This document shows positions 14,376 through 62,898 of a stretch of 64,000 bases of DNA, piece after piece (the first letter of the stretch is position 1; the number at the start of each line of letters is the position of its first letter). Under the pieces are notes generated by a model. That model did not search any database, was not told the origin of the DNA, and saw nothing but the letters and a program-made list of their open reading frames with translations. Made by a program: the position numbers and the translations under genes. This DNA comes from Macrostomum lignano (taxonomy: Eukaryota). Location of the stretch: the NCBI GenBank assembly GCA_002269645.1, contig NIVC01002138.1, positions 62,001 to 126,000 of the forward strand. The letters are read 5' to 3'.

Positions 14376-16214
14376 GAGATCAGTGGAATGACGAGAACAA
14401 GGATAGATCAGTGGAATGACGGGAACAAGGATAGATCAGTGGAATGACGGGAACAAGGATAGATCAGTGGAATGACGGGAACAAGGATAGGAGATCAGTG
14501 GAATGACGGGAACAAGGATAGGAGATCAGTGGAATGACGAGAACAAGGATAGATCAGTGGAATGACGGGAACAAGGATAGATCAGTGGAATGACGGGAAC
14601 AAGGATAGATCAGTGGAATGACGGGAACAAGGATAGATCAGTGGAATGACGGGAACAAGGATAGGAGATCAGTGGAATGACGGGAACAAAAATAGGATCA
14701 GTGGAATGACGGGAACAAGGATAGGAGATCAGTGGAATGACGGGAACAAGGATAGATCAGTGGAATGACGGGAACAAGGATAGATCAGTGGAATGACGGG
14801 AACAAGGATAGATCAGTGGAATGACGGGAACAAGGATAGATCAGTGGAATGACGGGAACAAGGATAGATCAGTGGAATGACGGGAACAAGGATAGATCAG
14901 TGGAATGACGGGAACAAGGATAGGAGATCAGTGGAATGACGGGAACAAGGATAGGAGATCAGTGGAATGACGGGAACAAGGATAGATCAGTGGAATGACG
15001 GGAACAAGGATAGATCAGTGGAATGACGGGAACAAGGATAGATCAGTGGAATGACGGGAACAAGGATAGATCAGTGGAATGACGGGAACAAGGATAGATC
15101 AGTGGAATGACGGGAACAAGGATAGATCAGTGGAATGACGGGAACAAGGATAGATCAGTGGAATGACGGGAACAAGGATAGGAGATCAGTGGAATGACGG
15201 GAACAAGGATAGGAGATCAGTGGAATGACGGGAACAAGGATAGGAGAACAGTGGAATGACGGGAACAAGGATAGATCAGTGGAATGACGGGAACAAGGAT
15301 AGATCAGTGGAATGACGGGAACAAGGATAGGAGATCAGTGGAATGACGGGAACAAGGATAGATCAGTGGAATGACGGGAACAAGGATAGGAGATCAGTGG
15401 AATGACGGGAACAAGGATAGATCAGTGGAATGACGGGAACAAGGATAGATCAGTGGAATGACGGGAACAAGGATAGGAGATCAGTGGAATGACGGGAACA
15501 AGGATAGATCAGTGGAATGACGGGAACAAGGATAGGAGATCAGTGGAATGACGGGAACAAGGATAGGAGAACAGTGGAATGACGGGAACAAGGATAGATC
15601 AGTGGAATGACGGGAACAAGGATAGATCAGTGGAATGACGGGAACAAGGATAGGAGATCAGTGGAATGACGGGAACAAAAATAGGATCAGTGGAATGACG
15701 GGAACAAGGATAGGAGATCAGTGGAATGACGGGAACAAGGATAGATCAGTGGAATGACGGGAACAAGGATAGGAGATCAGTGGAATGACGGGAACAAGGA
15801 TAGGAGATCAGTGGAATGACGGGAACAAGGATAGGAAAACAGTGGAATGACGGGAACAAGGATAGATCAGTGGAATGACGGGAACAAGGATAGATCAGTG
15901 GAATGACGGGAACAAGGATAGGAGATCAGTGGAATGACGGGAACAAGGATAGGAGATCAGTGGAATGACGGGAACAAGGATAGGAGAACAGTGGAATGAC
16001 GGGAACAAGGATAGATCAGTGGAATGACGGGAACAAGGATAGATCAGTGGAATGACGGGAACAAGGATAGGAGATCAGTGGAATGACGGGAACAAGGATA
16101 GGAGATCAGTGGAATGACGGGAACAAAAATAGGATCAGTGGAATGACGGGAACAAATAGGAGATCAGTGGAATGACGGGAACAAAAATAGGATCAGTGGA
16201 ATGACGGGAACAAG
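14376..16214 (+). repeat. 28/31-bp minisatellite GATCAGTGGAATGACGGGAACAAGGATA(GGA)
   Basis: Direct reading; two length variants are interspersed. Confidence 0.97.
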
Positions 16215-17314
16215 AAGACAGCTGAATCGAGGTGATCGAAGATAATTCGATTTTTTAATTAGGGATGAAATTCATTTTATCTATTGAGTCTATAGAATAT
16301 GACATACATATAACTATTATATTAATGTACTACACCAGTAGTACATAATATCCAACGTGTTTTTAGTCTACACAATCGGAAATTAGATTTTTATGCCTAT
16401 GTTTTTAAAGACTACAGGCAGTGGGACAATATACCTAAGGCAACTCAATAACTTTCAATTCGTTTTTTCATCATTGAATTTCGAGTTAACAAACAAGAAA
16501 ATTAATAACAAACAGAACAATAGCAGCAGCAGAGAGGCGAGGCAGAGCGGGAGAGGGAGAAGGAGAGGGGTTAGAGGGGAGGCATTCGGGAGGTAGAGGG
16601 GTAGATGGGTCTGGAGGCTCGTAATTTGCAGTGAGCAGAGCAGTTGAAGAAGCCGCAGTCGCAGCCGAAGTAGGTAATCTTAATAAAACCACCTGTCGCT
16701 TGAGCTAGCCGCAGAGCAAAGAGCTCAAACATTTCCTTTGCTCATATCATAGATCAGACTTAGACTCGGCTAGGTAAAAGATAAAATTAGAATTTTCAGC
16801 TACTAATTTAACAACAACCAGCTTGAACAAGTCCGCTTGCGGGGCCAATATATTAATAATAGATATTAATAGAAAACACGAAGTAAACAAGAACGACAAA
16901 AGCAGGGCGAGCAAAGCGCGGGCGCGGTAGTTGTAAAAGAAAAACCTGAAAAGTACAGGCCGCCCGTGCAAAATTAAGACTTAAAAATCGCAGAATAGGG
17001 ATAAGTGCAATAGTAATCTAGTTATAACACGGGGGTAGGCTGGGAGACAATTCAATCAGCTATAAATTTAAACACGCACAGAATGCAGCAAAACATGCAT
17101 TGAAAACATTTGCATGGCTTCTCTCAGCTATGCCAACGTGCTGCTGCTACTGGGAGAAATTACAGTTTGCACTGAGCCCTACTGTAAGTAGAGAGTTGCG
17201 GGCAAGTTGGCGCGTTGTGCTGAAGAAACTAATTTGGAAATAAAAAAATACGACGGGAATTCAGTTGCGACGGCGGGCTTCACGGGTCACAGCTTCACAA
17301 TTCTGCGCTGGATT

Positions 17315-19408
17315 GGAGGCTGGAGGGACATTATCGATGGGATTTGAAGGCTGGAGGGACATTATCGATGGGATTTGAAGGCTGGAGGGACATTATCGAT
17401 GGGATTTGAAGGCTGGGGGAACATTACCGATGGGATTTGAAGGCTGGGTAGGGACATTATCGATGGGATTTGGAGGCTGGGGGACATTATCGATGGGATT
17501 TGTAGGTTGGAGGGACATTATCGATGGGATTTGAAGGCTGGGGGGACACTATTGATGGGATTTGAAGGCTGAGGGACATTATCGATGGGATTTGAAGGCT
17601 GGGGGGACATTATCGATGGGATTTGAAGGCTGGGGGGACATTATCGATGGGATTTGAAGGCTGGGGGGACATTATTGATGGGATTTGAAGGCTGGGGGAC
17701 ATTATCGATGGGATTTGGACGCTGGGGGGACATTATCGATGGGATTTGAAGGCTGGGGGGACATTATCGATGGGATTTGGACGCTGGAGGGATATTATTG
17801 ATGGGATTTGGACGCTGGGGGGACATTATCGATGGGATTTGAAGGCTGAGGAGGGACATTATCGATGGGATTTGGAGGCTGGGGGACATTATCGATGGGA
17901 TTTGAAGGTTGGAGGGACATTATCGATGGGATTTGAAGGCTGGAGGGACATTATCGATGGGATTTGAAGGCTGGAGGGACATTACCGATGGGATTTGAAG
18001 GCTGGGGAGGGACATTATCGATGGGATTTGGAGGCTGGGGGACATTATCGATGGGATTTGAAGGTTGGAGGGACATTATCGATGGAATTTGAAGGCTGGG
18101 GGGGACATTATCGATGGGATTTGAAGGCTGGAGGGACATTATCGATGGGATTTGAAGGCTGGAGGGACATTATCGATGGGATTTGGAGGCTGAGGGGACA
18201 TTATCGATGGGATTTGAAGGCAGGAGGGACATTATCGATGGGATTTGAAGGCTGGGGGAACATTACCGATGGGATTTGAAGGCTGGGGAGGGACATTATC
18301 GATGGGATTTGAAGGTTGGAGGGACATTATCGATGGGATTTGAAGGCTGGAGGGACATTATCGATGGGATTTGAAGGCTGGAGGGACATTATCGATGGTA
18401 TTTGAAGGCTGGAGGGACATTATCGATGGGATTTGGAGACTGAGGGGACATTATCGATGGGATTTGAAGGCAGGAGGGACATTATCGATGGGATTTGAAG
18501 GCTGGAGGGACATTATCGATGGGATTTTCAAGGCTGGAGGGACATTATCGATGGGATTTGAAGGCTGGAGGGACATTATCGATGGGATTTGAAGGCTGGA
18601 GGGACATTATCGATGGGATTTGAAGGCTGGTGGGACATTATCGATGGGATTTGAAGGCTGGAGGCACATTATCGATGGGATTTGAAGGCTGGTGGGACAT
18701 TATCGATGGGATTTGAAGGCTGGGGGACATTATCGATGGGATTTGGAGGCTGGGGGACATTATCGATGGGATTTGAAGGCTGGGGGAACATTACCGATGG
18801 GATTTGAAGGCTGGGTAGGGACATTATCGATGGGATTTGGAGGCTGGGGGTCCTGGGGGACATTATCGATGGGATTTGAAGGTTGGAGGGACATTATCGA
18901 TGGGATTTGAAGGCTGGAGGGACATTATCGATGGGATTTGAAGGCTGGAGGGACATTATCGATGGGATTTGAAGGCTGGGGGAACATTACCGATGGGATT
19001 TGAAGGCTGGGGAGGGACATTATCGATGGGATTTGGAGGCTGGGGGACATTATCGATGGGATTTGAAGGTTGGAGGGACATTATCGATGGGATTTGAAGG
19101 CTGGGGGACATTATCGATGGGATTTGAAGGCTGGGGGAACATTACCGATGGGATTTGAAGGCTGGGGGAACATTACCGATGGGATTTGAAGGCTGGGGGA
19201 ACATTACCGATGGGATTTGAAGGCTGGGTAGGGACATTATCGATGGGATTTGGAGGCTGGGGGACATTATCGATGGGATTTGAAGGTTGGGGGGACATTA
19301 TCGATGGGATATGAAGGCTGGAGGGACATTATCGATGGGATTTGAAGGCTGGAGGGACATTATCGATGGGATTTGAAGGCTGGAGGGACATTATCGATGG
19401 GATTTGGA
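17315..19408 (+). repeat. About 31-bp minisatellite (GGAGGGACATTATCGATGGGATTTGAAGGCT)n
   Basis: Direct reading; length variation is concentrated in the G-run. Confidence 0.97.
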
Positions 19409-19858: not shown

Positions 19859-20156
19859 CTGCAATGCCGCAACGCAGGGTTTATTGCTTTTAATATTGGC
19901 AGTAGAGACTGACAGACTGGCACAGAAAGAAAACGGGTAAGACTATTTGTTTAAGATTATCACCTCAAAATTTTACTAGACACAAATTTATATATTGATT
20001 GATTTTTCCCATTAGGGCGTTACTAACGAAGGGCGAGCGAGCCTACAATTATGAATTTCTTAAAATTAAGTTTTTTACGTCAATTTTGCTATTCTGTTCT
20101 GAATGCATCTTAATATTGGAATTTTACCTCGAATATTCGATCATTCTGCTTGCGGG

Positions 20157-20873
20157 TTGGACTGAAGGAGGCAGAGACAAGTTGGACTGAAGGAGGGACA
20201 GACAAGTTGGACTGAAGGAGGGACAGACAAGTTGGAATGAAGGAGGCAGAGACAAGTTGGACTGAAGGAGGGACAGACAAGTTGGACTGAAAGAGGGACA
20301 GACAAGTTGGAATGAAGGAGAGACAGACAAGTTGGACTGAAGGAGGGACAGACAAGTTGGACTGAAGGACAGACAGACAAGTTGGACTGAAAGAGAGACA
20401 GACAAGTTGGAATGAAGGACAGACAAGTTGGACTGAAGGACAGACAAGTTGGACTGAAAGAGGGACAGACAAGTTGGACTAAAGGACAGACAAGTTGGAA
20501 TGAAGGACAGACAAGTTGGACTGAAGGACGGACAAGTTGGACTGAAGGAGGGACAGACAAGATGGACTGAAGGAGGGACAGACAAGATGGAAAGAAGGAG
20601 GGACAGACAAGTTGGACTGAAGGACAGACAAGTTGGACTGAAGGACGGACAAGTTGGACTGAAGGAGGGACAGACAAGATGGACTGAAGGAGGGACAGAC
20701 AAGATGGACTGAAGGAGGGACAGACAAGATGGAAAGAAGGAGGGACAGACAAGTTGGACTGAAGGACAGACAAGTTGGACTGAAGGACAGACAAGTTGGA
20801 CTGAAGGACAGACAAGATGGACTGAAGTAGGGACAGACAAGATGGACTGAAGGAGGGACAGACAAGTTGGACT
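20157..20873 (+). repeat. Intronic minisatellite, 21-25 bp (GACAGACAAGTTGGACTGAAGGAGG)n
   Basis: Direct reading; fills most of the last AMPK gamma intron. Confidence 0.95.
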
Positions 20874-20885
20874 GGGGCCACTCAC

Positions 20886-21513
20886 AATGACATCAAACTT
20901 GGAATAGATGTCCACCAGGCGGCCGTCTCCGTTAACAACTGGCAGAGCGCTGACCCGATTCTGCACAAACAGGCTGAGCACCCTAACCAGAGGCGTGGTC
21001 TCGCCAATAGTGACAATATCCGAGTAGGTGCCAATGCCCAGCTGTTTAACAGGCCTAGCCAGCCAGGCGGGCATCGGGAGCTGGTGTATGTACAGGAATA
21101 TGTACTTCAGAATGCGCTTGTGAGTCACAATGAACAGGGCATTGCCAGTGGCCGGGTCAATGACCGGCAGGCGGTGCACTCGAGCCTGCAGCAGCAGCCG
21201 GACAGCGTCGTGCAGAGACGCCTCTGGCGAGATCCAGATTAGCGGCTTGAGCCGGTTGCTCAGCTCGGCTCGCCAGGTGCTAATCCGATGGGTCTCCAGC
21301 TCTTCCATTGGCACCAGGGCGGATCGGTAATAGTTTTGCAGAATGTGAATGAAGTCGCTGATGGTCAGCATGCCGACAAATCTCTGCTGCTGGGCGTCCC
21401 AGAGCGGCGCGGCGCGCAGACCGTTATAGACTAGGGCGAAGAAGGCCTTACGCACGTTCAGGCTGTTGTCGAATACAAGCAGCTTGTTGCTAGTTGGAAT
21501 CAGGTCGTAGCAC
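20886..21513 (-). CDS. PRKAG: AMPK gamma subunit, main CBS-domain exon
   Basis: Acceptor CCCCGCAG|G, donor ATT|GTGAGT. Encodes CYDLIPTSNKLLVFD...KAFFALVYNGLRAAPLWD...GMLTISDFI...VHRLPVID...THKRILKY...RVSALPVV...DIYSKFDVI. Confidence 0.96.
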
Positions 21514-21537
21514 CTGCGGGGAGACGTTTCAGGATTC

Positions 21538-22345
21538 TGCTTGGCATTGGGGCTCCAGCGAATTCCCAACAACCAGGATGCCGCTTGGCATTGGGGCTCC
21601 AGCGAATTCCCAACAACCAGGATGCCGCTTGGCATTGGGGCTCCAGCGAATTCCCAACAACCAGGATGCCGCTTGGCATTGGGGCTCCAGCGAATTCCCA
21701 ACAACCAGGATGCCGCTTGGCATTGGGGCTCCAGCGAATTCCCAACAACCAGGATGCCGCTTGGCATTGGGGCTCCAGCGAATTCCCAACAACCAGGATG
21801 CCGCTTGGCATTGGGGCTCCAGCGAATTCCCAACAACCAGGATGCCGCTTGGCATTGGGGCTCCAGCGAATTCCAAACAACCAGGATGCCGCTTGGCATT
21901 GGGGCTCCAGCGAATTCCCAACAACCAGGATGCCGCTTGGCATTGGGGCTCCAGCGAATTCCAAACAACCAGGATGCCGCTTGGCATTGGGGCTCCAGCG
22001 AATTCCCAACAACCAGGATGCCGCTTGGCATTGGGGCTCCAGCGAATTCCAAACAACCAGGATGCCGCTTGGAATTGGGGCTCCAGCGAATTCCCAACAA
22101 CCAGGATGCCGCTTGGCATTGGGGCTCCAGCGAATTCCAAACAACCAGGATGCCGCTTGGCATTGGGGCTCCAGCGAATTCCAAACAACCAGGATGCCGC
22201 TTGGCATTGGGGCTCCAGCGAATTCCCAACAACCAGGATGCCGCTTGGCATTGGGGCTCCAGCGAATTCCAAACAACCAGGATGCCGCTTGGCATTGGGG
22301 CTCCAGCGAATTCCCAACAACCAGGATGCCGCTTGGCATTGGGGC
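21538..22345 (+). repeat. Intronic 44-bp minisatellite (GGCATTGGGGCTCCAGCGAATTCCCAACAACCAGGATGCCGCTT)n, about 18 copies
   Basis: Direct reading; copies are nearly identical. Confidence 0.97.
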
Positions 22346-40383: not shown

Positions 40384-43300
40384 TCCTAAAACATCAATTT
40401 AAAAACCCTAAAACACCGATTTAAGAACCCTAAAACATTTTTGAAAACCCTAAAACACCAATTTAAGAACCCTAAAACACCAATTTAAGAACCCTAAAAC
40501 ACCAATTTAAGAACCCTAAAACACCAATTTAAGAACCCTAAAACACCAATTTAAGAACCCTAAAACACCGATTTAAGAACCCTAAAACATTTTTGAAAAC
40601 CCTAAAACACCAATTTAAGAACCCTAAAACACCAATTTAAGAACCCTAAAACACCAATTTAAGAACCCTAAAACACCTATTTAAGAACCCTAAAACACCT
40701 ATTTAAGAACCCTAAAACACCAATTTAAGAACCCTAACACACCAATTTAAGAACCCTAACACACCAATTTAAGAACCCCAACACACCAATTTAAGAACCC
40801 TAAAACACCAATTTAAGAACCCTAACACACCAATTTAAGAACCCTAACACACCAATTTAAGAACCCCAACACACCAATTTAAGAACCCTAAAACACCTAT
40901 TTAAGAACCCTAAAACACCTATTTAAGAACCCTAAAACACCAATTTAAGAACCCTAAAACACCAATTTAAGAACCCTAACACACCAATTTAAGAACCCCA
41001 ACACACCAATTTAAGAACCCTAACACACCAATTTAAGAACCCTAACACACCAACTTAAGAACCCTAAAACACCAATTTAAGAACCCTAACACACCAATTT
41101 AAGAACCTAACACACCTATTTAAGAACCCTAACACACCAATTTAAGAACCCTAAAACACCTATTTAAGAACCCTAACACACCAATTTAAGAACCCTAACA
41201 CACCTATTTAAGAATCCTAAAACATCAATTTAAAAACCCTAAAACACTGATTTAGGAAACCCTAAAACATTTTTGAAAACCCTAAAACACCAACTTAAGA
41301 ACCCTAACACACCAACTTAAGAACCCTAAAACACCTATTTAAGAACCCTAAAACATTTTTGAAAACCCTAAAACACCAATTTAAGAACCCTAAAACATTT
41401 TTGAAAACCCTAAAACATCAACTTAAGAACCCTAACACACCAACTTAAGAACCCTAAAACACCAATTTAAGAACCCTAAAACACCAATTTAAGAACCCTA
41501 AAACACCTATTTAAGAACCCTAAAACACCTATTTAAGAACCCTAAAACACCTATTTAAGAACCCTAACACACCAATTAAGGAGCCCTAAAACACCAATTT
41601 AAGAACCCTAACACACCAATTTAAGAACCCTAAAACACCAATTTAAGAACCCTAACACACCAATTTAAGAACCCTAAAACACCAATTTAAGAACCCTAAC
41701 ACACCAATTTAAGAACCCTAAAACACCTATTTAAGAACCCTAAAACACCAATTTAAGAACCCTAACACACCAATTTAAGAACCCTAACACACCAATTTAA
41801 GAACCCTAACACACCAATTTAAGAACCCTAAAACACCTATTTAAGAACCCTAAAACACCAATTTAAGAACCCTAACACACCAATTTAAGAACCCTAACAC
41901 ACCAATTTAAGAACCCTAAAACACCTATTTAAGAACCCTAAAACACCAATTCAAGAACCCTAAAACACCAATTTAAGAAACCTAACACACCAATTTAAGA
42001 ACCCTAAAACACCAATTTAAGAACCCCAAAACACCTATTTAAGAACCCTAAAACACCAATTTAAGAACCCTAAAACACCTATTTAAGAACCCTAACACAC
42101 CAATTTAAGAACCCTAACACACCAATTTAAGAACCCTAAAACACCTATTTAAGAACCCTAAAACACCTATTTAAGAACCCTAAAACACCTATTTAAGAAC
42201 CCTAACACACCAATTTAAGAACCCTAACACACCAATTTAAGAACCCTAAAACACCTATTTAAGAACCCTAAAACACCTATTTAAGAACCCTAAAACACCT
42301 ATTTAAGAACCCTAACACACCAATTTAAGAACCCTAACACACCAATTTAAGAACCCTAAAACACCAATTTAAGAACCCTAACACACCAATTTAAGAACCC
42401 TAAAACACCTATTTAAGAACCCTAAAACACCTATTTAAGAACCCTAAAACACCTATTTAAGAACCCTAAAACACCTATTTAAGAACCCTAACACACCAAT
42501 TTAAGAACCCTAAAACACCTATTTAAGAACCCTAACACACCAACTTAAGAACCCTAAAACACCAATTTAAGAACCCTAACACACCAATTTAAGAACCCTA
42601 AAACACCTATTTAAGAACCCTAACACACCAATTTAAGAACCCTAAAACACCAATTTAAGAACCCTAACACACCAATTTAAGAACCCTAACACACCAATTT
42701 AAGAACCCTAAAACACCAATTTAAGAACCCCAAAACACCTATTTAAGAACCCTAAAACACCAATTTAAGAACCCTAAAACACCAATTTAAGAACCCTAAA
42801 ACACCTATTTAAGAACCCTAAAACACCGATTTAAGAACCCTAAAACATTTTTGAAAACCCTAAAACACCAATTTAAGAACCCTAAAACACCAATTTAAGA
42901 ACCCTAAAACACCAATTTAAGAACCCTAAAACACCTATTTAAGAACCCTAAAACACCTATTTAAGAACCCTAAAACACCAATTTAAGAACCCTAACACAC
43001 CAATTTAAGAACCCTAACACACCAATTTAAGAACCCCAACACACCAATTTAAGAACCCTAACACACCAATTTAAGAACCCCAACACACCAATTTAAGAAC
43101 CCTAAAACACCTATTTAAGAACCCTAAAACACCTATTTAAGAACCCTAAAACACCAATTTAAGAACCCTAAAACACCAATTTAAGAACCCTAACACACCA
43201 ATTTAAGAACCCAACACACCAATTTAAGAACCCTAACACACCAATTTAAGAACCCTAACACACCAACTTAAGAACCCTAAAACACCAATTTAAGAACCCT

Positions 43301-46300
43301 AACACACCAATTTAAGAACCCTAACACACCTATTTAAGAACCCTAACACACCAATTTAAGAACCCTAAAACACCTATTTAAGAACCCTAACACACCAATT
43401 TAAGAACCCTAACACACCTATTTAAGAACCTAAAACATCAATTTAAAAACCCTAAAACACTGATTTAGGAAACCCTAAAACATTTTTGAAAACCCTAAAA
43501 CACCAACTTAAGAACCCTAACACACCAACTTAAGAACCCTAAAACACCTATTTAAGAACCCTAAAACATTTTTGAAAACCCTAAAACACCAATTTAAGAA
43601 CCCTAAAACATTTTTGAAAACCCTAAAACATCAACTTAAGAACCCTAACACACCAACTTAAGAACCCTAAAACACCAATTTAAGAACCCTAAAACACCAA
43701 TTTAAGAACCCTAAAACACCTATTTAAGAACCCTAAAACACCTATTTAAGAACCCTAAAACACCTATTTAAGAACCCTAACACACCAATTTAAGAACCCT
43801 AAAACACCAATTTAAGAACCCTAACACACCAATTTAAGAACCCTAACACACCAATTTAAGAACCCTAAAACACCAATTTAAGAACCCTAACACACCAATT
43901 TAAGAACCCTAACACACCAATTTAAGAACCCTAACACACCAATTTAAGAACCCTAACACACCAATTTAAGAACCCTAACACACCAATTTAAGAACCCTAA
44001 CACACCAATTTAAGAACCCTAACACACCAATTTAAGAACCCTAACACACCAATTTAAGAACCCTAACACACCAATTTAAGAACCCTAACACACCAATTTA
44101 AGAACCCTAACACACCAATTTAAGAACCCTAACACACCAATTTAAGAACCTAACACACCAATTTAAGAACCCTAACACACCAATTTAAGAACCCTAACAC
44201 ACCAATTTAAGAACCCTAAAACACCAATTTAAGAACCCTAACACACCAATTTAAGAACCCTAAAACACCTATTTAAGAACCCTAACACACCAATTTAGAA
44301 CCCTAACACACCAATTTAAGAACCCTAACACACCAATTTAAGAACCCTAAAACACCTATTTAAGAACCCTAAAACACCAATTTAAGAACCCTAACACACC
44401 AATTTAAGAACCCTAACACACCAATTTAAGAACCCTAAAACACCAATTTAAGAACCCTAACACACCAATTTAAGAACCCTAAAACACCTATTTAAGAACC
44501 CTAAAACACCAATTCAAGAACCCTAAAACACCAATTTAAGAACCCTAAAACACCTATTTAAGAACCCTAAAACACCGATTTAAGAACCCTAAAACATTTT
44601 TGAAAACCCTAAAACACCTATTTAAGAACCCTAAAACATTTTTGAAAACCCTAAAACACCAATTTAAGAACCCTAAAACATTTTTGAAAACCCTAAAACA
44701 TCAACTTAAGAACCCTAACACACCAACTTAAGAACCCTAAAACACCAATTTAAGAACCCTAAAACACCAATTTAAGAACCCTAAAACACCTATTTAAGAA
44801 CCCTAAAACACCTATTTAAGAACCCTAAAACACCTATTTAAGAACCCTAACACACCAATTTAAGAGCCCTAAAACACCAATTTAAGAACCCTAACACACC
44901 AATTTAAGAACCCTAAAACACCAATTTAAGAACCCTAACACACCAATTTAAGAACCCTAAAACACCAATTTAAGAACCCTAACACACCAATTTAAGAACC
45001 CTAAAACACCTATTTAAGAACCCTAAAACACCAATTTAAGAACCCTAACACACCAATTTAAGAACCCTAACACACCAATTTAAGAACCCTAACACACCAA
45101 TTTAAGAACCCTAAAACACCTATTTAAGAACCCTAAAACACCAATTTAAGAACCCTAACACACCAATTTAAGAACCCTAACACACCAATTTAAGAACCCT
45201 AAAACACCTATTTAAGAACCCTAAAACACCAATTCAAGAACCCTAAAACACCAATTTAAGAACCTAACACACCAATTTAAGAACCCTAAAACACCAATTT
45301 AAGAACCCAAAACACCTATTTAAGAACCCTAAAACACCAATTTAAGAACCCTAAAACACCTATTTAAGAACCCTAACACACCAATTTAAGAACCCTAACA
45401 CACCAATTTAAGAACCCTAAAACACCTATTTAAGAACCCTAAAACACCTATTTAAGAACCCTAAAACACCTATTTAAGAACCCTAACACACCAATTTAAG
45501 AACCCTAACACACCAATTTAAGAACCCTAAAACACCTATTTAAGAACCCTAAAACACCTATTTAAGAACCCTAAAACACCTATTTAAGAACCCTAACACA
45601 CCAATTTAAGAACCCTAACACACCAATTTAAGAACCCTAAAACACCAATTTAAGAACCCTAACACACCAATTTAAGAACCCTAAAACACCTATTTAAGAA
45701 CCCTAAAACACCTATTTAAGAACCCTAAAACACCTATTTAAGAACCCTAAAACACCTATTTAAGAACCCTAACACACCAATTTAAGAACCCTAAAACACC
45801 TATTTAAGAACCCTAACACACCAACTTAAGAACCCTAAAACACCAATTTAAGAACCCTAACACACCAATTTAAGAACCCTAAAACACCTATTTAAGAACC
45901 CTAACACACCAATTTAAGAACCCTAAAACACCAATTTAAGAACCCTAACACACCAATTTAAGAACCCTAACACACCAATTTAAGAACCCTAAAACACCAA
46001 TTTAAGAACCCCAAAACACCTATTTAAGAACCCTAAAACACCAATTCAAGAACCCTAAAACACCAATTTAAGAACCCTAAAACACCTATTTAAGAACCCT
46101 AAAACACCGATTTAAGAACCCTAAAACATTTTTGAAAACCCTAAAACACCAATTTAAGAACCCTAAAACACCAATTTAAGAACCCTAAAACACCAATTTA
46201 AGAACCCTAAAACACCTATTTAAGAACCCTAAAACACCTATTTAAGAACCCTAAAACACCAATTTAAGAACCCTAACACACCAATTTAAGAACCCTAACA

Positions 46301-49300
46301 CACCAATTTAAGAACCCCAACACACCAATTTAAGAACCCTAACACACCAATTTAAGAACCCTAACACACCAACTTAAGAACCCTAAAACACCAATTTAAG
46401 AACCCTAACACACCAATTTAAGAACCCTAACACACCTATTTAAGAACCCTAACACACCAATTTAAGAACCCTAAAACACCTATTTAAGAACCCTAACACA
46501 CCAATTTAAGAACCCTAACACACCTATTTAAGAATCCTAAAACATCAATTTAAAAACCCTAAAACACTGATTTAGGAAACCCTAAAACATTTTTGAAAAC
46601 CCTAAAACACCAACTTAAGAACCCTAACACACCAACTTAAGAACCCTAAAACACCTATTTAAGAACCCTAAAACATTTTTGAAAACCCTAAAACACCAAT
46701 TTAAGAACCCTAAAACATTTTTGAAAACCCTAAAACATCAACTTAAGAACCCTAACACACCAACTTAAGAACCCTAAAACACCAATTTAAGAACCCTAAA
46801 ACACCAATTTAAGAACCCTAAAACACCTATTTAAGAACCCTAAAACACCTATTTAAGAACCCTAAAACACCTATTTAAGAACCCTAACACACCAATTTAA
46901 GAACCCTAAAACACCAATTTAAGAGCCCTAACACACCAATTTAAGAACCCTAACACACCAATTTAAGAACCCTAAAACACCAATTTAAGAACCCTAACAC
47001 ACCAATTTAAGAACCCTAACACACCAATTTAAGAACCCTAACACACCAATTTAAGAACCCTAACACACCAATTTAAGAACCCTAACACACCAATTTAAGA
47101 ACCCTAACACACCAATTTAAGAACCCTAACACACCAATTTAAGAACCCTAACACACCAATTTAAGAACCCTAACACACCAATTTAAGAACCCTAACACAC
47201 CAATTTAAGAACCCTAACACACCAATTTAAGAACCCTAACACACCAATTTAAGAACTCTAACACACCAATTTAAGAACCCTAACACACCAATTTAAGAAC
47301 CCTAACACACCAACTTAAGAACCCTAAAACACCAATTTAAGAACCCTAACACACCAATTTAAGAACCCTAAAACACCTATTTAAGAACCCTAACACACCA
47401 ATTTAAGAACCCTAACACACCAATTTAAGAACCCTAACACACCAATTTAAGAACCCTAAAACACCTATTTAAGAACCCTAAAACACCAATTTAAGAACCC
47501 TAACACACCAATTTAAGAACCCTAACACACCAATTTAAGAACCCTAAAACACCAATTTAAGAACCCTAACACACCAATTTAAGAACCCTAAAACACCTAT
47601 TTAAGAACCCTAAAACACCAATTCAAGAACCCTAAAACACCAATTTAAGAACCCTAAAACACCTATTTAAGAACCCTAAAACACCGATTTAAGAACCCTA
47701 AAACATTTTTGAAAACCCTAAAACACCAATTTAAGAACCCTAAAACACCAATTTAAGAACCCTAAAACACCAATTTAAGAACCCTAAAACACCTATTTAA
47801 GAACCCTAAAACACCTATTTAAGAACCCTAAAACACCAATTTAAGAACCCTAACACACCAATTTAAGAACCCTAACACACCAATTTAAGAACCCCAACAC
47901 ACCAATTTAAGAACCCTAAAACACCAATTTAAGAACCCTAACACACCAATTTAAGAACCCTAACACACCAATTTAAGAACCCCAACACACCAATTTAAGA
48001 ACCCTAAAACACCTATTTAAGAACCCTAAAACACCTATTTAAGAACCCTAAAACACCAATTTAAGAACCCTAAAACACCAATTTAAGAACCCTAACACAC
48101 CAATTTAAGAACCCCAACACACCAATTTAAGAACCCTAACACACCAATTTAAGAACCCTAACACACCAACTTAAGAACCCTAAAACACCAATTTAAGAAC
48201 CCTAACACACCAATTTAAGAACCCTAACACACCTATTTAAGAACCCTAACACACCAATTTAAGAACCCTAAAACACCTATTTAAGAACCCTAACACACCA
48301 ATTTAAGAACCCTAACACACCTATTTAAGAATCCTAAAACATCAATTTAAAAACCCTAAAACACTGATTTAGGAAACCCTAAAACATTTTTGAAAACCCT
48401 AAAACACCAACTTAAGAACCCTAACACACCAACTTAAGAACCCTAAAACACCTATTTAAGAACCCTAAAACATTTTTGAAAACCCTAAAACACCAATTTA
48501 AGAACCCTAAAACATTTTTGAAAACCCTAAAACATCAACTTAAGAACCCTAACACACCAACTTAGGAACCCTAAAACACCAATTTAAGAACCCTAAAACA
48601 CCAATTTAAGAACCCTAAAACACCTATTTAAGAACCCTAAAACACCTATTTAAGAACCCTAAAACACCTATTTAAGAACCCTAACACACCAATTTAAGAA
48701 CCCTAAAACACCAATTTAAGAGCCCTAACACACCAATTTAAGAACCCTAACACACCAATTTAAGAACCCTAAAACACCAATTTAAGAACCCTAACACACC
48801 AATTTAAGAACCCTAACACACCAATTTAAGAACCCTAACACACCAATTTAAGAACCCTAACACACCAATTTAAGAACCCTAACACACCAATTTAAGAACC
48901 CTAACACACCAATTTAAGAACCCTAACACACCAATTTAAGAACCCTAACACACCAATTTAAGAACCCTAACACACCAATTTAAGAACCCTAACACACCAA
49001 TTTAAGAACCCTAACACACCAATTTAAGAACCCTAACACACCAATTTAAGAACCCTAACACACCAATTTAAGAACCCTAACACACCAATTTAAGAACCCT
49101 AACACACCAACTTAAGAACCCTAAAACACCAATTTAAGAACCCTAACACACCAATTTAAGAACCCTAAAACACCTATTTAAGAACCCTAACACACCAATT
49201 TAAGAACCCTAACACACCAATTTAAGAACCCTAACACACCAATTTAAGAACCCTAAAACACCTATTTAAGAACCCTAAAACACCAATTTAAGAACCCTAA

Positions 49301-50980
49301 CACACCAATTTAAGAACCCTAACACACCAATTTAAGAACCCTAAAACACCTATTTAAGAACCCTAAAACACCAATTCAAGAACCCTAAAACACCAATTTA
49401 AGAAACCTAACACACCAATTTAAGAACCCTAAAACACCAATTTAAGAACCCCAAAACAACTATTTAAGAACCCTAAAACACCAATTTAAGAACCCTAAAA
49501 CACCTATTTAAGAACCCTAACACACCAATTTAAGAACCCTAACACACCAATTTAAGAACCCTAAAACACCTATTTAAGAACCCTAAAACACCTATTTAAG
49601 AACCCTAAAACACCTATTTAAGAACCCTAACACACCAACTTAAGAACCCTAACACACCAATTTAAGAACCCTAAAACACCTATTTAAGAACCCTAAAACA
49701 CCTATTTAAGAACCCTAAAACACCTATTTAAGAACCCTAACACACCAATTTAAGAACCCTAACACACCAATTTAAGAACCCTAAAACACCAATTTAAGAA
49801 CCCTAACACACCAATTTAAGAACCCTAAAACACCTATTTAAGAACCCTAAAACACCTATTTAAGAACCCTAAAACACCTATTTAAGAACCCTAAAACACC
49901 TATTTAAGAACCCTAACACACCAATTTAAGAACCCTAACACACCAATTTAAGAACCCTAACACACCAATTTAAGAACCCTAACACACCAATTTAAGAACC
50001 CTAAAACACCAATTTAAGAACCCTAACACACCAATTTAAGAACCCTAACACACCAATTTAAGAACCCTAAAACACCAATTTAAGAACCCCAAAACACCTA
50101 TTTAAGAACCCTAAAACACCAATTCAAGAACCCTAAAACACCAATTTAAGAACCCTAAAACACCTATTTAAGAACCCTAAAACACCAATTTAAGAACCCT
50201 AAAACACCAATTTAAGAACCCCAAAACACCTATTTAAGAACCCTAAAACACCAATTCAAGAACCCTAAAACACCAATTTAAGAACCCTAACACACCAATT
50301 TAAGAACCCTAAAACACCTATTTAAGAACCCTAAAACACCTATTTAAGAACCCTAAAACACCAATTCAAGAACCCTAACACACCTATTTAAGAACCCTAA
50401 AACACCTATTTAAGAACCCTAAAACACCAATTTAAGAACCCTAACACACCAATTTAAGAACCCTAAAACACCAATTTAAGAACCCCAAAACACCTATTTA
50501 AGAACCCTAAAACACCAATTCAAGAACCCTAAAACACCAATTTAAGAACCCTAAAACACCTATTTAAGAACCCTAAAACACCAATTTAAGAACCCTAAAA
50601 CACCAATTTAAGAACCCCAAAACACCTATTTAAGAACCCTAAAACACCAATTCAAGAACCCTAAAACACCAATTTAAGAACCCTAACACACCAATTTAAG
50701 AACCCTAAAACACCTATTTAAGAACCCTAAAACACCAATTTAAGAACCCTAAAACACCAATTCAAGAACCCTAACACACCTATTTAAGAACCCTAAAACA
50801 CCTATTTAAGAACCCTAAAACACCAATTTAAGAAACCTAACACACCAATTTAAGAACCCTAAAACACCAATTTAAGAACCCCAAAACACCTATTTAAGAA
50901 CCCTAAAACACCAATTCAAGAACCCTAAAACACCAATTTAAGAACACTAAAACATTTTTGAAAACCCTAAAACACCTATT
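40384..50980 (+). repeat. 10.6-kb macrosatellite of a 22-bp unit (AAGAACCCTAAAACACCAATTT)n containing CCCTAA
   Basis: Direct reading; about 480 units by length, with recurrent point variants and kb-scale duplications. Confidence 0.98.
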
Positions 50981-51894: not shown

Positions 51895-52742
51895 CTGCGG
51901 AGCAGTTAGGCTTAAGACTCAGCCTATATGGCAATACTGCAGATCGATCGATCGATTGATTGATTGAATTGAATTTTTAAGCACCTATAGACTCCCGAAG
52001 AAGCGAATCCATGAGCCTCATCTGAGGTTGATGCCAAATGTTACTCGTAATCGCTTTTGATTTCGAAAAAGTTCTACGAGGTACTACTGAGGGACAGTTC
52101 GTCCTATCCCTCCAGCTCTAATGTACTTTTGCACAGATTTTTTTCGGCCAATTGTTCTTAGTCCCAAAATTGTGTCTGCGAAAAAACCTTAATTGATTCA
52201 ACGCATATTGCATAAAAATCGATATATAAATTTTACTAAATTTTCTTGTTTGCGATCTTTGCTACAATATTGTTTCAAAGATATATCAAAAATATAAAAA
52301 ATCATTCCGATTTCATACGTATGTGTTAGAAATGCAGTTAAAACAAGTGCCATATACTCGTATATCAGGGGCGTAAGACTGTCGAGCAGGGGCCAATTGA
52401 AAAAAGTAAGCTCTTTTGGGACGTCCGGTATATCAGAGCTGAGGCTTGATATTAATATCTGATCATCTGAAAGCGTTGATTTCATTAGACATTCGTACCC
52501 GCGATGGGAACTAGCTCGCATTTTAATTTGTGCTCCGTACTTTGCAGGACATCAATCTTCAGGAAGTTGCTTAAATTTTAACGCTTACATGCTTACTTAA
52601 CTACTAATAGACGGTAAGTAGGCATGTAAGATTTGTCGCATGAAATTGTCGCAAATAACCACGAGTAAACTAACTGATAAATCTGATAGCATTGTTATAA
52701 AACGCAGAAGTTTAACGGGTAATGTCTGGTTAAAATCCAGAC

Positions 52743-52838
52743 CTTCATGTCCAGCAGCTTCAGCGCTGAACTGTCGTTGTTCATTAGCATCGCTAAGATC
52801 TCCTCGGCCCCCTGAGACGTGAACGAGTTCTGGTCCAA
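52743..52838 (-). CDS. LRRC74: LRRC74-like protein, exon 7
   Basis: CTTTCAG|TTG ... AAG|GTCTGG; encodes LDQNSFTSQGAEEILAMLMNNDSSALKLLDMK. Confidence 0.82.
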
Positions 52839-52917
52839 CTGAAAGAAGTAAGTGTTTTATGCCAGTGTTTAAGAAATGCTTAGCGACGAACGAATCGTCA
52901 AATCGGCTAAAACCCAC

Positions 52918-53112
52918 AAATAGTTCCTGGAGGCAGCAATTGACTGACAGCATTTCGCCCAGCGCCTTGGCGCCCTCCAAGAAGATTCTATTCGACGACA
53001 GGTTCAGCGACTTCAACGAGCGATTGGCGCGAAGTCCGCTGGCCAACGCCGCGGTGCCGTCGTCAGCGAATCCGTTGCAACTGAGGTCGAGCCACTGGAG
53101 ACTGGCGTTTGT
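52918..53112 (-). CDS. LRRC74: LRRC74-like protein, exon 6 (RI-type LRRs)
   Basis: ATTCAG|ACA ... TTT|GTGGGT; encodes TNASLQWLDLSCNGFADDGTAALASGLRANRSLKSLNLSSNRIFLEGAKALGEMLSVNCCLQELF. Confidence 0.9.
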
Positions 53113-53459
53113 CTGAATTGTCATGGAGATACGGTTGGAGACTTCTCTATAGATAGAAATAGTGTTACAGCCCTGGTTCTACAACCCTGGATTGTAAAAT
53201 CGGCACCCATGGGCAGTGGAACCGGAACCTCTAGTCTCTAGTGATGAACCAGAACCTCCGTCCCTGGACTCCCTGGACTGGACTGGACTCCCTGGAGTCC
53301 CTGGACTTTGTATCCTCTGGTCCCTGGACATTGGATCCTCTGGTCCCTGGACTTTGGATCCTCTGATCCCTAGACTGTGGAACCGGCACCAATGGGCTGT
53401 AGATCCGGCCCATTATCCGGATACGAGACATATAAACAGAGGCTAATGTCAGATCGAAC

Positions 53460-58668: not shown

Positions 58669-60257
58669 GGCGATTCGATAGGGCGGATTGAGGACGATTC
58701 TATAGGGTGGATTGGGGGCGATTCTATAGGGTGGATGTGGATTGGGGCGATTCTATAGGGTGGATTGGGGGCGATTCTATAGGGTGGATGTGGATTGGGG
58801 GCGATTCTTTAGGGTGGATTGGGGGCGATTCTATAGGGTGGATTGGGGGCGATTCTATAGGGTGGATGTGGATTGGGGGCGATTCTTTAGGGTGGATTGG
58901 GGGCGATTCTATAGGGTGGATTGGGGGCGATTCTATAGGGTGGATGTGGATTGGGGCGATTCTTTAGGGTGGATTGGGGGCGATTCTATCGGGTGGATTG
59001 GGGGCGATTCTATAGGGTGGATTGGGGGCGATTCTATAGGGTGGATTGAGAGCGATTCTTTCGGGTGGATTAAGGGCGATTCTATAGGGTTGCTTGAGGG
59101 TGATTCTATAGGGCGGATTGAGGGCGATTCTATAGGGTGGATTGAGGACGATTCTATAGGGCGGATTGAGGACGATTCTATAGGGTGGATTGATGGCGAT
59201 TCTATAGGGTGGATTGAGGACGATTCTATAGGGTGGATTGAGGGCGATTCTATAGGGTGGATTGGGGGCGATTCTATAGGGTGGATTGAGGGCGATTCTA
59301 TAGGGTGGATTGGGGGCGATTCTATAGGGCGGATTGAGGGCGATTCGATAGGGCGGATTGAGGACGATTCTATAGGGTGGATTGGGGGCGATTCTATAGG
59401 GTGGATGTGGATTGGGGCGATTCTATAGGGTGGATTGGGGGCGATTCTTTAGGGTGGATTGGGGGCGATTCTATAGGGTGGATTGGGGGCGATTCTATAG
59501 GGTGGATGTGGATTGGGGGCGATTCTTTAGGGTGGATTGGGGGCGATTCTATCGGGTGGATTGGGGGCGATTCTATAGGGTGGATTGGGGGCGATTCTAT
59601 AGGGTGGATTGAGAGCGATTCTTTCGGGTGGATTAAGGGCGATTCTATAGGGTTGCTTGAGGGTGATTCTATAGGGCGGATTGAGGGCGATTCTATAGGG
59701 TGGATTGAGGACGATTCTATAGGGCGGATTGAGGACGATTCTATAGGGTGGATTGATGGCGATTCTATAGGGTGGATTGAGGGCGATTCTATAGGGTGGA
59801 TTGAGGGCGATTCTATAGGGCGGATTGAGGGCGATTCTATAGGGTTGATTGAGGGCGATTCTATCGGGTTGATTGAGGGCGATTCTATCGGGTGGATTAA
59901 GGGCGATTCTATCGGGTGGATTAAGAGCGATTCTATAGGGTGGATTGAGGGCGATTCTATAGGGTGGATTGAGGGCGATTCTATAGGGTGGATTGAGGGC
60001 GATTCTATAGGGTGGATTGAGGGCGATTCTATCGGGTGGATTAAGGGCGATTCTATCGGGTGAATTGAGGGCGATTCTATAGGGTTGATTGAGGGCGATT
60101 CTATAGGGTTGATTGAGGGCGATTCTATCGGGTTGATTGAGGGCGATTCTATCGGGTTGATTGAGGGCGATTCTATCGGGTGGATTAAGGGCGATTCTAT
60201 CGGGTGGATTAAGGGCGATTCTATAGGGTGGATTGAGGGCGATTCTATAGGGTGGAA
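58669..60257 (+). repeat. 24-bp minisatellite (GGGCGATTCTATAGGGTGGATTGA)n with a higher-order duplication of about 670 bp
   Basis: Direct reading; identical variant runs begin at about 58707 and 59377. Confidence 0.96.
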
Positions 60258-60851
60258 TTTAGACAACAAAATTTAGACAATTTAGACAATTTTAGTATGT
60301 TCAAAAATATTTTTTTACTTATTTATTTTAGGGTTGATGCAGTTGCTCTTTCTGGTGTAGTTGCGGTTTACTAACGAGGAGATGCGATCAAAAGTAGCAA
60401 CAATACTTTCTGGACAGACCTCGTAGCTAATTTTATTTGGCTTATGCTTTTAAATTATAATATAACATTAGTTAAATGATCTGCATTATATAAAGGTTTA
60501 AAAGCTGCGTAACTAAAGCTGAAGACTCGTATTGTTTAAGTCTTTAGAAATCAACAGTAACTGAAAGTACTCCAGCACTATAAGAAAGTATTGAAGGCCT
60601 ATTTTTTAAAAATTGCCAAAATGTAACTCTTGATGCGAGCTTTACCAAAAGTACATCCAATTAAGTAATCTATCATTCAAGTTGAATTCTAAGCTTTTCT
60701 TTTAAGCTTCGACAATTTCATTCAGTTTGAGTTCGAATCGGCCTTCAAAACATTTATGAGATTCCCCTAGAGCAGTTATGATCAGTCTGTTTAGTAAATT
60801 AGTTAAATAATGCTTGCGATTTAAAAAAGTTCATCGCGTCCTTCATTTCCA

Positions 60852-61742
60852 TCAGCTGTCTGCGGCCGGCACAATTCGAACTCGCTGCGACACGCCGAAC
60901 CGCGTGTGAAATGTGCCGGCCGTCACGAAGGCGACCTTGCTGCTGCCCTCCGGGTGCCGGAAGCCGAGGTTTCGCTGGAACACCTGGCGCAGATTCGGGA
61001 TCACGATTGGCAGCAGGTAGCGATTGTCCTTGGTGTACAGGCGCACCTTGATGCGGCCGGATAGGTAGGTGACGGCCGTGAACCGGGCCTTGAACTCGTT
61101 CTCCTCAATCACCACCTCCGCTTCCACCCGGGAGGGCCGGCCGTCCCGGCTGCCGGGCACCCGGATCTCCGTGTTGATGGCCCACGTCACCTCGGACTCC
61201 ACCGACTTCTCCGACTCCTTCTCCAAGCTGAACTCGGCGCTGAAGCCGGCGTTGAGTTCCAGGATGTCCTGCGGCAGCGCGAGCTTCAGGCCGAACTCCT
61301 GGTTGAGCACGAGGCCGCGGGTGATGCGGTAGCAGCAGCTCGAGCGGGTGGTCCTGCTGGTGTTGATGTGGTTGACGATCTCGTGCGGGCACTCGTTGGT
61401 GTACACCGTGCGGAATGCACAGCAGCTGCTGGTGCTGGGCCTCAGCGCCCGGCCCTGAGCCACCACCGTGACGGCCTCGGAGGCAAGCAGCTTGTCATCG
61501 TCGCCCTCGCCGTCGCCGCCAGCGCGGTTGGCCGCCTCAGGCTCGTAGTTGGGCACGGCGGTGACCACCTGCAGCTCGCGGGTGTCGATCTCTCGGCGCA
61601 GTTCGCCCCAGGGCAGCCGGCAGCCGAGCGACTTCTCCAAGTCCTTGCGTTCGTTCCTGTCGTAGATGGCTTCGGCAAACCTGTCAACGATGTCGTCAAG
61701 GTTGACGATCTGCTCCTTGAGTGCCGCCGGCTCGTCCGCCAT
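60852..61742 (-). CDS. Aerolysin-superfamily beta-pore-forming protein (LIN-24-like / ETX-MTX2-like pore-forming module), 296 aa
   Basis: Uninterrupted GC-rich CDS. FRTVYTN...NTSRTTRSSCCYRITRGLVLNQEFGLKL..P..ILELNAGFSAEFSL...ESEVTWAINTEIRVP...AEVVIEENEFKARF fits the LIN-24-like pattern FxTxFTN...TxRTTxSxC...LKLxxP..E.NAGF...TW..dsqIxVP...AeLVI.E. A polypyrimidine tract and acceptor CCCCAG| at 61767 indicate the track start at 61820 is intronic. Confidence 0.8.
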   Translation of the reverse strand: MADEPAALKEQIVNLDDIVDRFAEAIYDRNERKDLEKSLGCRLPWGELRREIDTRELQVVTAVPNYEPEAANRAGGDGEGDDDKLLASEAVTVVAQGRALRPSTSSCCAFRTVYTNECPHEIVNHINTSRTTRSSCCYRITRGLVLNQEFGLKLALPQDILELNAGFSAEFSLEKESEKSVESEVTWAINTEIRVPGSRDGRPSRVEAEVVIEENEFKARFTAVTYLSGRIKVRLYTKDNRYLLPIVIPNLRQVFQRNLGFRHPEGSSKVAFVTAGTFHTRFGVSQRVRIVPAADS

Positions 61743-62061
61743 GACCGCCCGAGTTCCAGCCGTGTTGCTGGGGTGGAGGCAACGGGAAAGAAGAATGAAA
61801 TTAGGGGATCGGAGATCCACCCTGCCAGTCTGTATTTAATGCCGAACCGATCGATCGGACTCCTGCCCTCCCAGCCCCAGCAGGCATTTCATAGGGAAGC
61901 CCAGAATGACTCTTGTTTTCCTCTCTCTCATTTCCTTGCCGCCCCAAGGCTTGGCAACAACCGGGGGCGCATTTTTTCGGAGAAGCCTCTCCAGTCTGCT
62001 GCTCAGATTAATAATCCCGCCTTCACCCTGAGCAGTCAATCTGATTTTTTCGATCGGCCAC

Positions 62062-62092
<31 letters not shown>

Positions 62093-62898
62093 CGATAAGC
62101 ATGCAGTGTGTAGGAGAATTCCCCAATACAAGCTGCGAGCCTGACTGAGCTATATTTGCCGCACAATAATGCACCGTGTGGAACTCTGTGTGGAAGAGCT
62201 GACTGTATTAACAATTCGAAGCAGTTCTGTTCAATATACGAAGCAAAAGAATCCCAATAATTTGAATATACGTAATATTTACCAACTTTGCAAACAAAAT
62301 GCACAGAGCCTAAGGATTCTGTCAAATATAAAATAATAACAAAATTAATAATTATTCAAATCACCAAAATATGAAAGTTACCTTTTGATATTTACCTAAG
62401 AGTCACTGGATGGCAGACCTGCAGAGGATAGTTTAAGTTGGCAACAGAAAGATTCGCGGAAGAGAATAAAAACTTGTGCAGTTTGATTCCAGACTGGTCA
62501 GGCCAATCTAAACGCGAAAACTATGCAGATGAAAGCGATAAAACAAAGTCTTTGTTAAGTGTTTCTGGTTTAGTTTCTGCTGGCACACTGCAAATAAATG
62601 AGTAAACCTGCTTCTGCAGATTAAAGACAATTTCTTAAAAAAAGCTGCTTTTTCGACGTGTTGTCTTTCTTCTACGTGTATAGTTTCCTAGAAATGATGC
62701 GATGCTGTCCGAATAAAAATGTTAGGGCAAACTACTTGTAGTAGCTAGTGCGAACATATTTGCAAGCGAGTTTATGTAGCGGTTTCAATGCGCACTTATA
62801 TCTTTCAAGTTATGACTCCTTTGACAACCGCTGATAATAATAAAATAATAGTAATAATAATAATAATAATGATAATAGTCACAATATTACCAATCGCT

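Follow-up and report, generated by a model that had tools for sequence, protein, structure and literature searches.

LIN-24 of Caenorhabditis elegans is a protein of 271 amino acids (aa) with an aerolysin-like domain at residues 68–193. It is described as intracellularly regulated, with roles in stress and immunity, and not as a secreted toxin; it is reported to be cytotoxic when mutated and inducible by starvation and infection, with protective effects (PMC12945463). Biomphalysins, glabralysins, and hydralysins are invertebrate members of the aerolysin superfamily for which an immune or cytolytic role has been proposed (PMC3605176, PMC7016736). Here we describe a LIN-24-like gene in a stretch of 64,000 nucleotides (nt) from the flatworm Macrostomum lignano (assembly GCA_002269645.1, contig NIVC01002138.1, positions 62,001–126,000 of the forward strand), which we call the window and number from its first letter. 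The locus is very likely a functional, intron-less M. lignano gene whose product is a divergent metazoan LIN-24-like member of the ETX/MTX2 β-pore-forming family.

Both strands of positions 60500–62100 hold a single long open reading frame (ORF). It lies on the minus strand, runs from an ATG at 61742–61740 to a TGA at 60854–60852, and encodes 296 aa, with an in-frame stop 32 codons 5′ of the ATG. The original prediction, made from the DNA letters, had described a 296-aa single-exon coding sequence (CDS) of a probable flatworm without naming its strand; the ORF is indeed intact, and the window is 100% identical to the M. lignano (macrostomid) contig NIVC01002138.1. Homology marks the ORF as a real gene: an exhaustive HMMER search of 1.84 billion representative proteins returned 187 homologs at E ≤ 1e-3 (69 at E ≤ 1e-10), mostly 240–300 aa in length and matching residues ∼100–291 of the window protein. 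Its single-exon status is supported because it covers the family alignment in full, beginning with the N-terminal helix and ending with the C-terminal strand. The exact protein is encoded on two M. lignano contigs of the same assembly, NIVC01002138.1 and NIVC01002092.1. The two CDS copies differ at three positions, all of them synonymous third positions, with no non-synonymous difference; this agrees with constraint, but is weak evidence of purifying selection because the flanks of the two copies themselves diverge by 0.1–3.2%. No additional copies of the gene were found within the 64-kb window. The gene has no introns, and its CDS has a GC content of 65% (0.90 at third codon positions, GC3), with flanks at 33% and 51% GC. 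The gene and the parts of its product are arranged as follows, with residue numbers counted from the initiator Met.

60852–61742, minus strand: complete single-exon CDS of a LIN-24-like ETX/MTX2 (aerolysin-fold) protein, 296 codons plus TGA (from homologs, hhalign, AlphaFold2 [AF2], and Foldseek)
61539–61742, minus strand: N-terminal head region, residues 1–68, with a helix at 15–39 and three short strands (from AF2, the family consensus, and the Cry51Aa alignment)
61443–61538, minus strand: acidic, Gly-rich insert segment, residues 69–100 (from alignments; predicted local distance difference test score [pLDDT] 57–64)
61314–61442, minus strand: Ser/Thr-rich long β strands before the hairpin, residues 101–143 (13 of 43 residues Ser or Thr; strands 103–116 and 122–146)
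61215–61313, minus strand: putative membrane-insertion (pre-stem) hairpin, residues 144–176 (from sequence; P157 invariant in 50 homologs)
60855–61214, minus strand: long strands of the middle and tail domains, residues 177–296 (from alignments; strands 178–195, 204–229, and 270–292)
61768–61800, minus strand: acceptor-like site, a polypyrimidine tract ending in CAG, its AG (61769–61768) 25 nt 5′ of the ATG

The named homologs are all animal. They comprise M. lignano BOX15_Mlig017252 (three gene copies) and Schistosoma spindale among flatworms; Adineta ricciae, A. vaga, and Seison nebaliae among rotifers and their allies; the acanthocephalan Neoechinorhynchus agilis; the nematodes Trichinella spp. 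(as fused gene models) and Ancylostoma; the mollusc Haliotis; the hemichordate Saccoglossus kowalevskii; and the cephalochordate Branchiostoma. A word-indexed search found only the window protein and its M. lignano paralog P0002 (UniRef A0A1I8GTC6, 59% identity), and three proteins when the family profile was used. The conserved elements of a 50-sequence alignment are, in order, an N-terminal DLxxxVxxWA helix, an FxNxT...TERxTxSxC strand pair, a hairpin with an invariant Pro, the motifs EELTWxVDS and AELxIxExxYxGxF, and a C-terminal GxCxFRYGVxQ strand. The Pfam family ETX_MTX2 (PF03318; curated cutoff 22 bits) matches 39 of the 50 aligned homologs at E ≤ 1, and 7 of the 10 homologs scanned individually reach the cutoff. 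Scores are 51.5 bits for P0005, 45.6 for P0009, 39.1 for C. elegans LIN-24, 36.0 for P0006, 34.8 for P0008, 32.9 for P0003, 32.1 for P0011, and 22.0, exactly the cutoff, for P0004; the ETX_MTX2-matching homologs align to the window protein at E values of 8.5e-35 to 2.4e-23. Compared with the PDB, the family profile matches natterin-like Dln1 (6.4e-9), Cry23Aa1 (4.6e-8), Cry51Aa (1.4e-7), parasporin-2 (4.8e-3), and the Laetiporus haemolytic lectin LSL (6.2e-3), and it meets Cry51Aa at the very N terminus, from position 6–7. These profile matches, the Pfam scores of the homologs, and the structural comparison below bear out the proposed membership of the aerolysin, or ETX/MTX2, family, an assignment that we regard as very probable.

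The relationship to LIN-24 extends over the length of the protein. BLASTP aligns the window protein with C. elegans LIN-24 (B0001.1) at 27% identity over 190 residues (E 7e-20), and hhalign aligns the flatworm/rotifer subgroup with nematode LIN-24 with a probability of 100% (E 7.3e-41, 252 columns; query 9–296, LIN-24 1–266). Because this second alignment starts at the N-terminal helix and reaches the last strand, the label “LIN-24-like” given in the original prediction is justified at full length. A search from the Ancylostoma homolog P0053 leads to a nematode family in which most members carry PF03318 and some are named “CRE-LIN-24 protein”; its Caenorhabditis cluster contains C. elegans B0001.1 beside CBR-, CRE-, and CBN-LIN-24, each of 271 aa, the length published for LIN-24 (PMC12945463).

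AF2 gave an unusable model from the single sequence (pLDDT 33.5) and a usable one from the 50-sequence alignment (pLDDT 85.7, predicted template modeling score 0.77), with these elements:

Residues 15–39: long helix (pLDDT 93–97 for residues 11–60)
Residues 49–68: short strands
Residues 70–100: low-confidence loop (pLDDT 57–64)
Residues 103–116, 122–146, 178–195, 204–229, and 270–292: very long strands (pLDDT >90 for the last three)
Residues 149–174: short strand, helical turn, and strand (strands 149–155 and 170–174), at the lower pLDDT usual for a hairpin loop

The predicted fold is thus an elongated ETX/MTX2 structure, with a helix-containing head, long Ser/Thr-rich strands with the hairpin, and a C-terminal β sandwich. 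All 36 Foldseek matches in the PDB at E ≤ 1e-3 are aerolysin-fold proteins or carry that module. The top matches are Cry23Aa1 (5.6e-12) and the 26-kDa Bacillus thuringiensis (Bt) crystal protein 2D42 (6.3e-12), with template modeling scores of 0.52–0.61 over ∼290–300 columns; Cry51Aa, parasporin-2, epsilon toxin (8e-8), Mpp75Aa1, Dln1, aerolysin, lamprey immune protein, and LSL are also matched. The original prediction had proposed AlphaFold and Foldseek among its checks, and lack of the aerolysin pore-forming module as one result that would speak against it; the predicted structure has an aerolysin-type module.

The original prediction placed an amphipathic hairpin in the peptide GLVLNQEFGLKLALP...LNAGFSAEFSL, which corresponds to residues 143–173. 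We assign the putative hairpin to residues 144–176, LVLNQEFGLKLALP-QD-ILELNAGFSAEFSLEKE, with the invariant P157 at the turn and the whole falling within the part of the family profile (positions 70–184) aligned to the aerolysin module of Dln1. In its second arm L161, L163, A165, F167, A169, F171, and L173 alternate with E162, N164, G166, S168, E170, S172, and E174, and in its first arm F150, L152, L154, and L156 alternate with G, K, and A; each arm, at ∼13 residues, would suffice to cross a bilayer as a tilted β strand. The assignment is made from position in the fold and conservation in the alignment, not from the alternation pattern. Upstream, residues 101–143 bear the family motif TN(E)C / TxRTTRSxC, in which N116 is invariant and R130 and T132 are nearly so. 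The two SSCC motifs noted by the original prediction are present, at residues 105–108 and 134–137 (61419–61430 and 61332–61343), but are not conserved and carry no family signal: P0002 has SHSC and ASCS at these positions, and only C136 is the family-conserved Cys of SxC. We rejected SSCC as a metal, disulfide, or lipidation signal because it is unconserved both in this closest paralog and in the family. Residues 177–296 retain the conserved W187, E214, F221, G229, G276, and Q286 and include a lineage-specific loop insert of five to six residues, GSRDGR, at 197–202, specific to the branch of the window protein and P0002; almost no extension follows the last conserved strand. The acidic, Gly-rich insert (about residues 69–95) lengthens its region by ∼28 residues relative to most of the family; it is found only in the window protein and P0002.

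The N terminus is acidic. The top 8-residue Kyte-Doolittle mean within residues 1–40 is 1.34 and the highest 19-residue mean across the whole protein is 0.65, so the protein has no signal peptide or transmembrane helix. It is leaderless, as had been claimed: a hydrophobic N-terminal segment is absent, and 96 of 100 full-length homologs are likewise leaderless. A Pfam scan of the window protein found no accessory domain of any family. The further claim that there is no obvious receptor-binding domain is correct for accessory lectin domains but does not extend to the ETX/MTX2 head, whose N-terminal helix and strands are present and align with the N terminus of Cry51Aa.

Comparison with the M. 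lignano paralogs bears on the origin of this gene. BOX15_Mlig017252 (P0004; 269 aa) aligns with the window protein end to end at 30% identity (E 8e-46). Its gene, on NIVC01000481.1, is 52% GC across its CDS and is interrupted after codon 61 by a single 509-nt intron in phase 0, bounded by GTAAGT at the donor and CAG at the acceptor. It differs from the window gene, which is intron-less, has a GC3 of 0.90, and carries the acidic insert, in having an intron, a GC3 of 0.61, no insert, and a Pfam score of 22.0 bits. The insert starts at the position homologous to the Mlig017252 intron, an arrangement compatible with intron exonization, with retro-copying followed by loop expansion, or with coincidence. 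We infer that the window copy and P0002 represent a side branch of the LIN-24-like family that evolves fast and is specific to flatworms.

Several database models of the family look mis-built or mis-named. In the P0002 model (343 aa), 73 residues that the family does not share precede the likely Met, and the C-terminal part of the family alignment is missing; its UniRef name, “Rad60-SLD domain,” finds no support in a Pfam scan of the whole 343-aa model. P0002 matches no Pfam family at E ≤ 10 and no PDB sequence. The Trichinella homologs (P0057) are fused to ERCC-6/RAD54-like models of ∼1160 aa, and other nematode members bear the unrelated UniRef names “Vitellogenin,” “ITIH3,” and “CABIT domain.”

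Upstream of the CDS, the AG at 61769–61768 is preceded by 20 nt of which 17 are pyrimidines, and is a candidate cis- or spliced leader (SL)-trans-splice acceptor. The original prediction had noted an acceptor 25 nt before the ATG, and it is present in the sequence; the upper bound given there for the gene, 61767, falls on the final base of the 25 nt that separate AG and ATG. Comparable sites number 28 per 128 kb (both strands of the window), so one would be expected within 100 nt of the ATG in ∼2% of cases by chance. In M. lignano, SL trans-splicing affects about 30% of genes and uses an acceptor motif [T/C]TNCAG; the site here, CCCCAG, has CAG in common with that motif and C in place of T (PMC8629364). 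An operon is unlikely because the gene is isolated among minisatellites, with tandem arrays on its flanks and no same-strand gene nearby, and because its sole called upstream neighbor lies ∼3.6 kb away, past the end of the window, on the opposite strand. A TTAAATA element ∼95 nt 5′ of the ATG and a (GA)n/(TC)n microsatellite at 62060–62090, ∼320–350 bp 5′ of the ATG, could be parts of the promoter region.

The data establish family membership by homology, a predicted aerolysin-type fold, and the absence of a leader, and the testable elements of the original interpretation are all supported. In a model drawn from what is established for aerolysin and ETX/MTX2 proteins, a soluble monomer would bind a membrane through its head end and then oligomerize into a ring, and the hairpins would swing out of the oligomer to form a β-barrel pore. 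The protein is most likely cytosolic, and would either act on the animal's own membranes under tight control or leave the cell by unconventional release. Cytosolic synthesis is favored because the family is leaderless and conserved across phyla and because LIN-24 is described as acting within the worm's own cells. By analogy with the fold relatives, we lean slightly toward pore formation by the window protein.

A number of observations weigh against this model or limit its reach. Taken alone, the window protein matches no Pfam family at E ≤ 10 and no PDB sequence; its place in the family follows only from transitive homology and from the predicted fold. In a rough neighbor-joining tree (midpoint-rooted, 256 trimmed columns, long branches, no support values), the window protein and P0002 share a long branch with Mlig017252 and the metagenomic P0003, close to the proteins of rotifers and acanthocephalans and outside the clade of nematode LIN-24, so that orthology with LIN-24 and any transfer of its function are uncertain. 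The review of LIN-24 itself calls its “precise structure, regulatory mechanisms...” undefined and reports no oligomerization, membrane binding, or pore formation for it (PMC12945463). Other observations would suit a protein that has kept the aerolysin fold, lost pore formation, and now serves in binding, scaffolding, or signaling. The fold is no guarantee of lytic activity: 2D42, which with Cry23Aa1 is one of the top two structural matches, is a crystal protein described as lacking toxicity. T118 is Cys in the window protein, the conserved Cys of the C-terminal GxC motif is Phe, and a disordered acidic insert has been gained. The amphipathicity of the hairpin is not statistically exceptional either: its β-hydrophobic moment ranks second in the protein, and 358 of 2000 shuffled sequences reach the maximum of the real protein. 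The hairpin of the original prediction stands in its alternating arms, its invariant P157, and its Ser/Thr-rich upstream flank, but its pattern is not significant relative to shuffled sequence. Such a loss of lytic function is nonetheless unlikely in our judgment, given that P157 and a clean seven-step hydrophobic/polar alternation in the second arm are kept, as are 11 of the 12 invariant or near-invariant family positions, T118 being the exception. The original prediction inferred a cytolytic or immune effector. Such a protein, resembling hydralysins, would be exported without a signal peptide, by an unconventional or holocrine route, for defense, predation, or digestion, and would attack foreign membranes and not those of the animal itself. 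The fold is indeed that of bona fide toxins, lineage-specific duplication and fast divergence resemble those of arms-race effector genes, and hydralysins are leaderless yet released; leaderlessness across distant phyla and the conserved N-terminal region fit a housekeeping or regulated role better, and the protein has no lectin or other targeting module; we judge this idea rather unlikely. More speculative still, and in our view rather improbable, is that the LIN-24-like family represents ancient, bilaterian-wide, cytosolic aerolysin-fold executors, endogenous and regulated, that permeabilize membranes in a gasdermin-like way, and of which the window gene would be a recently derived, fast-evolving duplicate that could have gained a new regulation or target; the duplicate could then stem from a retro-copy or from exonization of an ancestral intron.

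Two further explanations concern the locus rather than the activity of its product. An intron-less copy of a gene whose paralog Mlig017252 has a phase-0 intron, set between tandem arrays with no same-strand gene nearby, might be a silent retro-copy or a young pseudogene in minisatellite-rich intergenic DNA. This is very unlikely: both genomic copies preserve the 296-codon ORF whole and show only the three synonymous differences, the 59%-identical paralog keeps the same architecture, the GC3 of 0.90 against flanks of 33–51% GC is a coding-type signature, and a good acceptor-like site lies 25 nt 5′ of the ATG. A reading of positions 60600–62200, which was not a systematic search, turned up neither a poly(A) remnant nor a target-site duplication. 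The same contrast in GC content (65% in the CDS) and the lack of an intron might instead point to recent horizontal transfer from bacteria or to contamination of the assembly, and one report describes the entry of aerolysin-like genes into metazoans by horizontal transfer (PMC8047071). The nearest relatives, however, are M. lignano paralogs and other animal proteins, the named matches are all metazoan, and the gene lies within M. lignano contigs as long as 209 and 161 kb, its flanks in the two matching each other; similarity to LIN-24 (E 7e-41) is also far stronger than to the bacterial PDB proteins (E about 1e-7 to 1e-9). We consider a recent bacterial origin or contamination extremely improbable.

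The remainder of the window is rich in tandem repeats and holds other coding candidates:

58669–60256: 24-bp minisatellite, ∼65 copies, beginning ∼600 bp 3′ of the stop codon of the gene; yields long spurious ORFs in several frames (GDSIGWIE..., HPIESPSI...)
40385–50980: 10.6-kb array of a 22-bp satellite, CCTAAAACACCAATTTAAGAAC, ∼484 copies with 92% matches; strand-asymmetric, with a GC skew of about −0.72 and an AT skew of about +0.41
12201–13723, 14377–16214, and 17313–19406: examples from more than 20 further minisatellite arrays
7161–8420, minus strand: GC-rich 419-aa ORF, probably a single-exon gene of the G-protein-coupled receptor type, with weak sub-threshold matches to Srw (17.8 bits) and 7tm_1 (16.5 bits)
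20124–22295, minus strand: long ORF whose central part carries CBS domains (E 7e-22) in the manner of AMPK-gamma-type proteins; likely a single exon of a gene for a CBS-domain protein, lengthened artificially by 25-bp and 44-bp tandem repeats around the CBS part
52597–53124, minus strand: 175-aa ORF with RNI-type leucine-rich repeats (LRR_6, E 1.3e-10); likely an exon of a gene for a leucine-rich repeat protein

The analysis supplies a name and a predicted fold for a gene whose M. lignano paralogs are labeled “hypothetical protein,” and adds free-living flatworms to the nematodes, rotifers, acanthocephalans, schistosomes, mollusc, hemichordate, and amphioxus that have LIN-24-type leaderless aerolysin-fold proteins. 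It is an annotation gain within a known family and not a new kind of system; a divergent flatworm protein of such a family will not surprise a specialist. In the literature searched, no paper joins Macrostomum and aerolysin, and the three that name both aerolysin and planarians do so only in passing. M. lignano, with its tools for RNA interference, transgenesis, and in situ work, could become a second genetic system beside C. elegans for homologs of cytosolic pore formers.

Among described proteins, the best structural matches are the Bt proteins Cry23Aa1, 2D42, Cry51Aa, and parasporin-2, which match near full length (E 5.6e-12 to 3e-8) and align with the family profile from the N-terminal helix onward. 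Unlike the window protein, these ETX/MTX2-type (Mpp) proteins are bacterial crystal or secreted proteins, and identity to them is only 11–16%. Many of them require proteolytic activation, whereas the window protein, at either terminus, has next to nothing to cleave off. Zebrafish Dln1, lamprey immune protein, and Bombina ALP have an aerolysin-type pore-forming module in common with it, Dln1 being both the best PDB match of the profile (E 6.4e-9) and a Foldseek match. Only ∼200 columns align between the vertebrate aerolysin-like proteins and the window family, and the vertebrate natterin-like and aerolysin-like proteins add a lectin (jacalin-type) or other targeting domain that the window protein lacks. 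Biomphalysins, glabralysins, and hydralysins, likened to it here by description only, belong to the same superfamily; none was among the named homologs looked up. From LIN-24 the window protein departs in its 28-residue acidic insert and five- to six-residue loop insert, in the absence of the ∼10-residue insert that precedes the last strand in nematode LIN-24, and in having no match to Pfam ETX_MTX2, which LIN-24 passes at 39 bits. It nonetheless has the same format as LIN-24: a single module of ∼270–300 aa, free of signal peptide and accessory domain.

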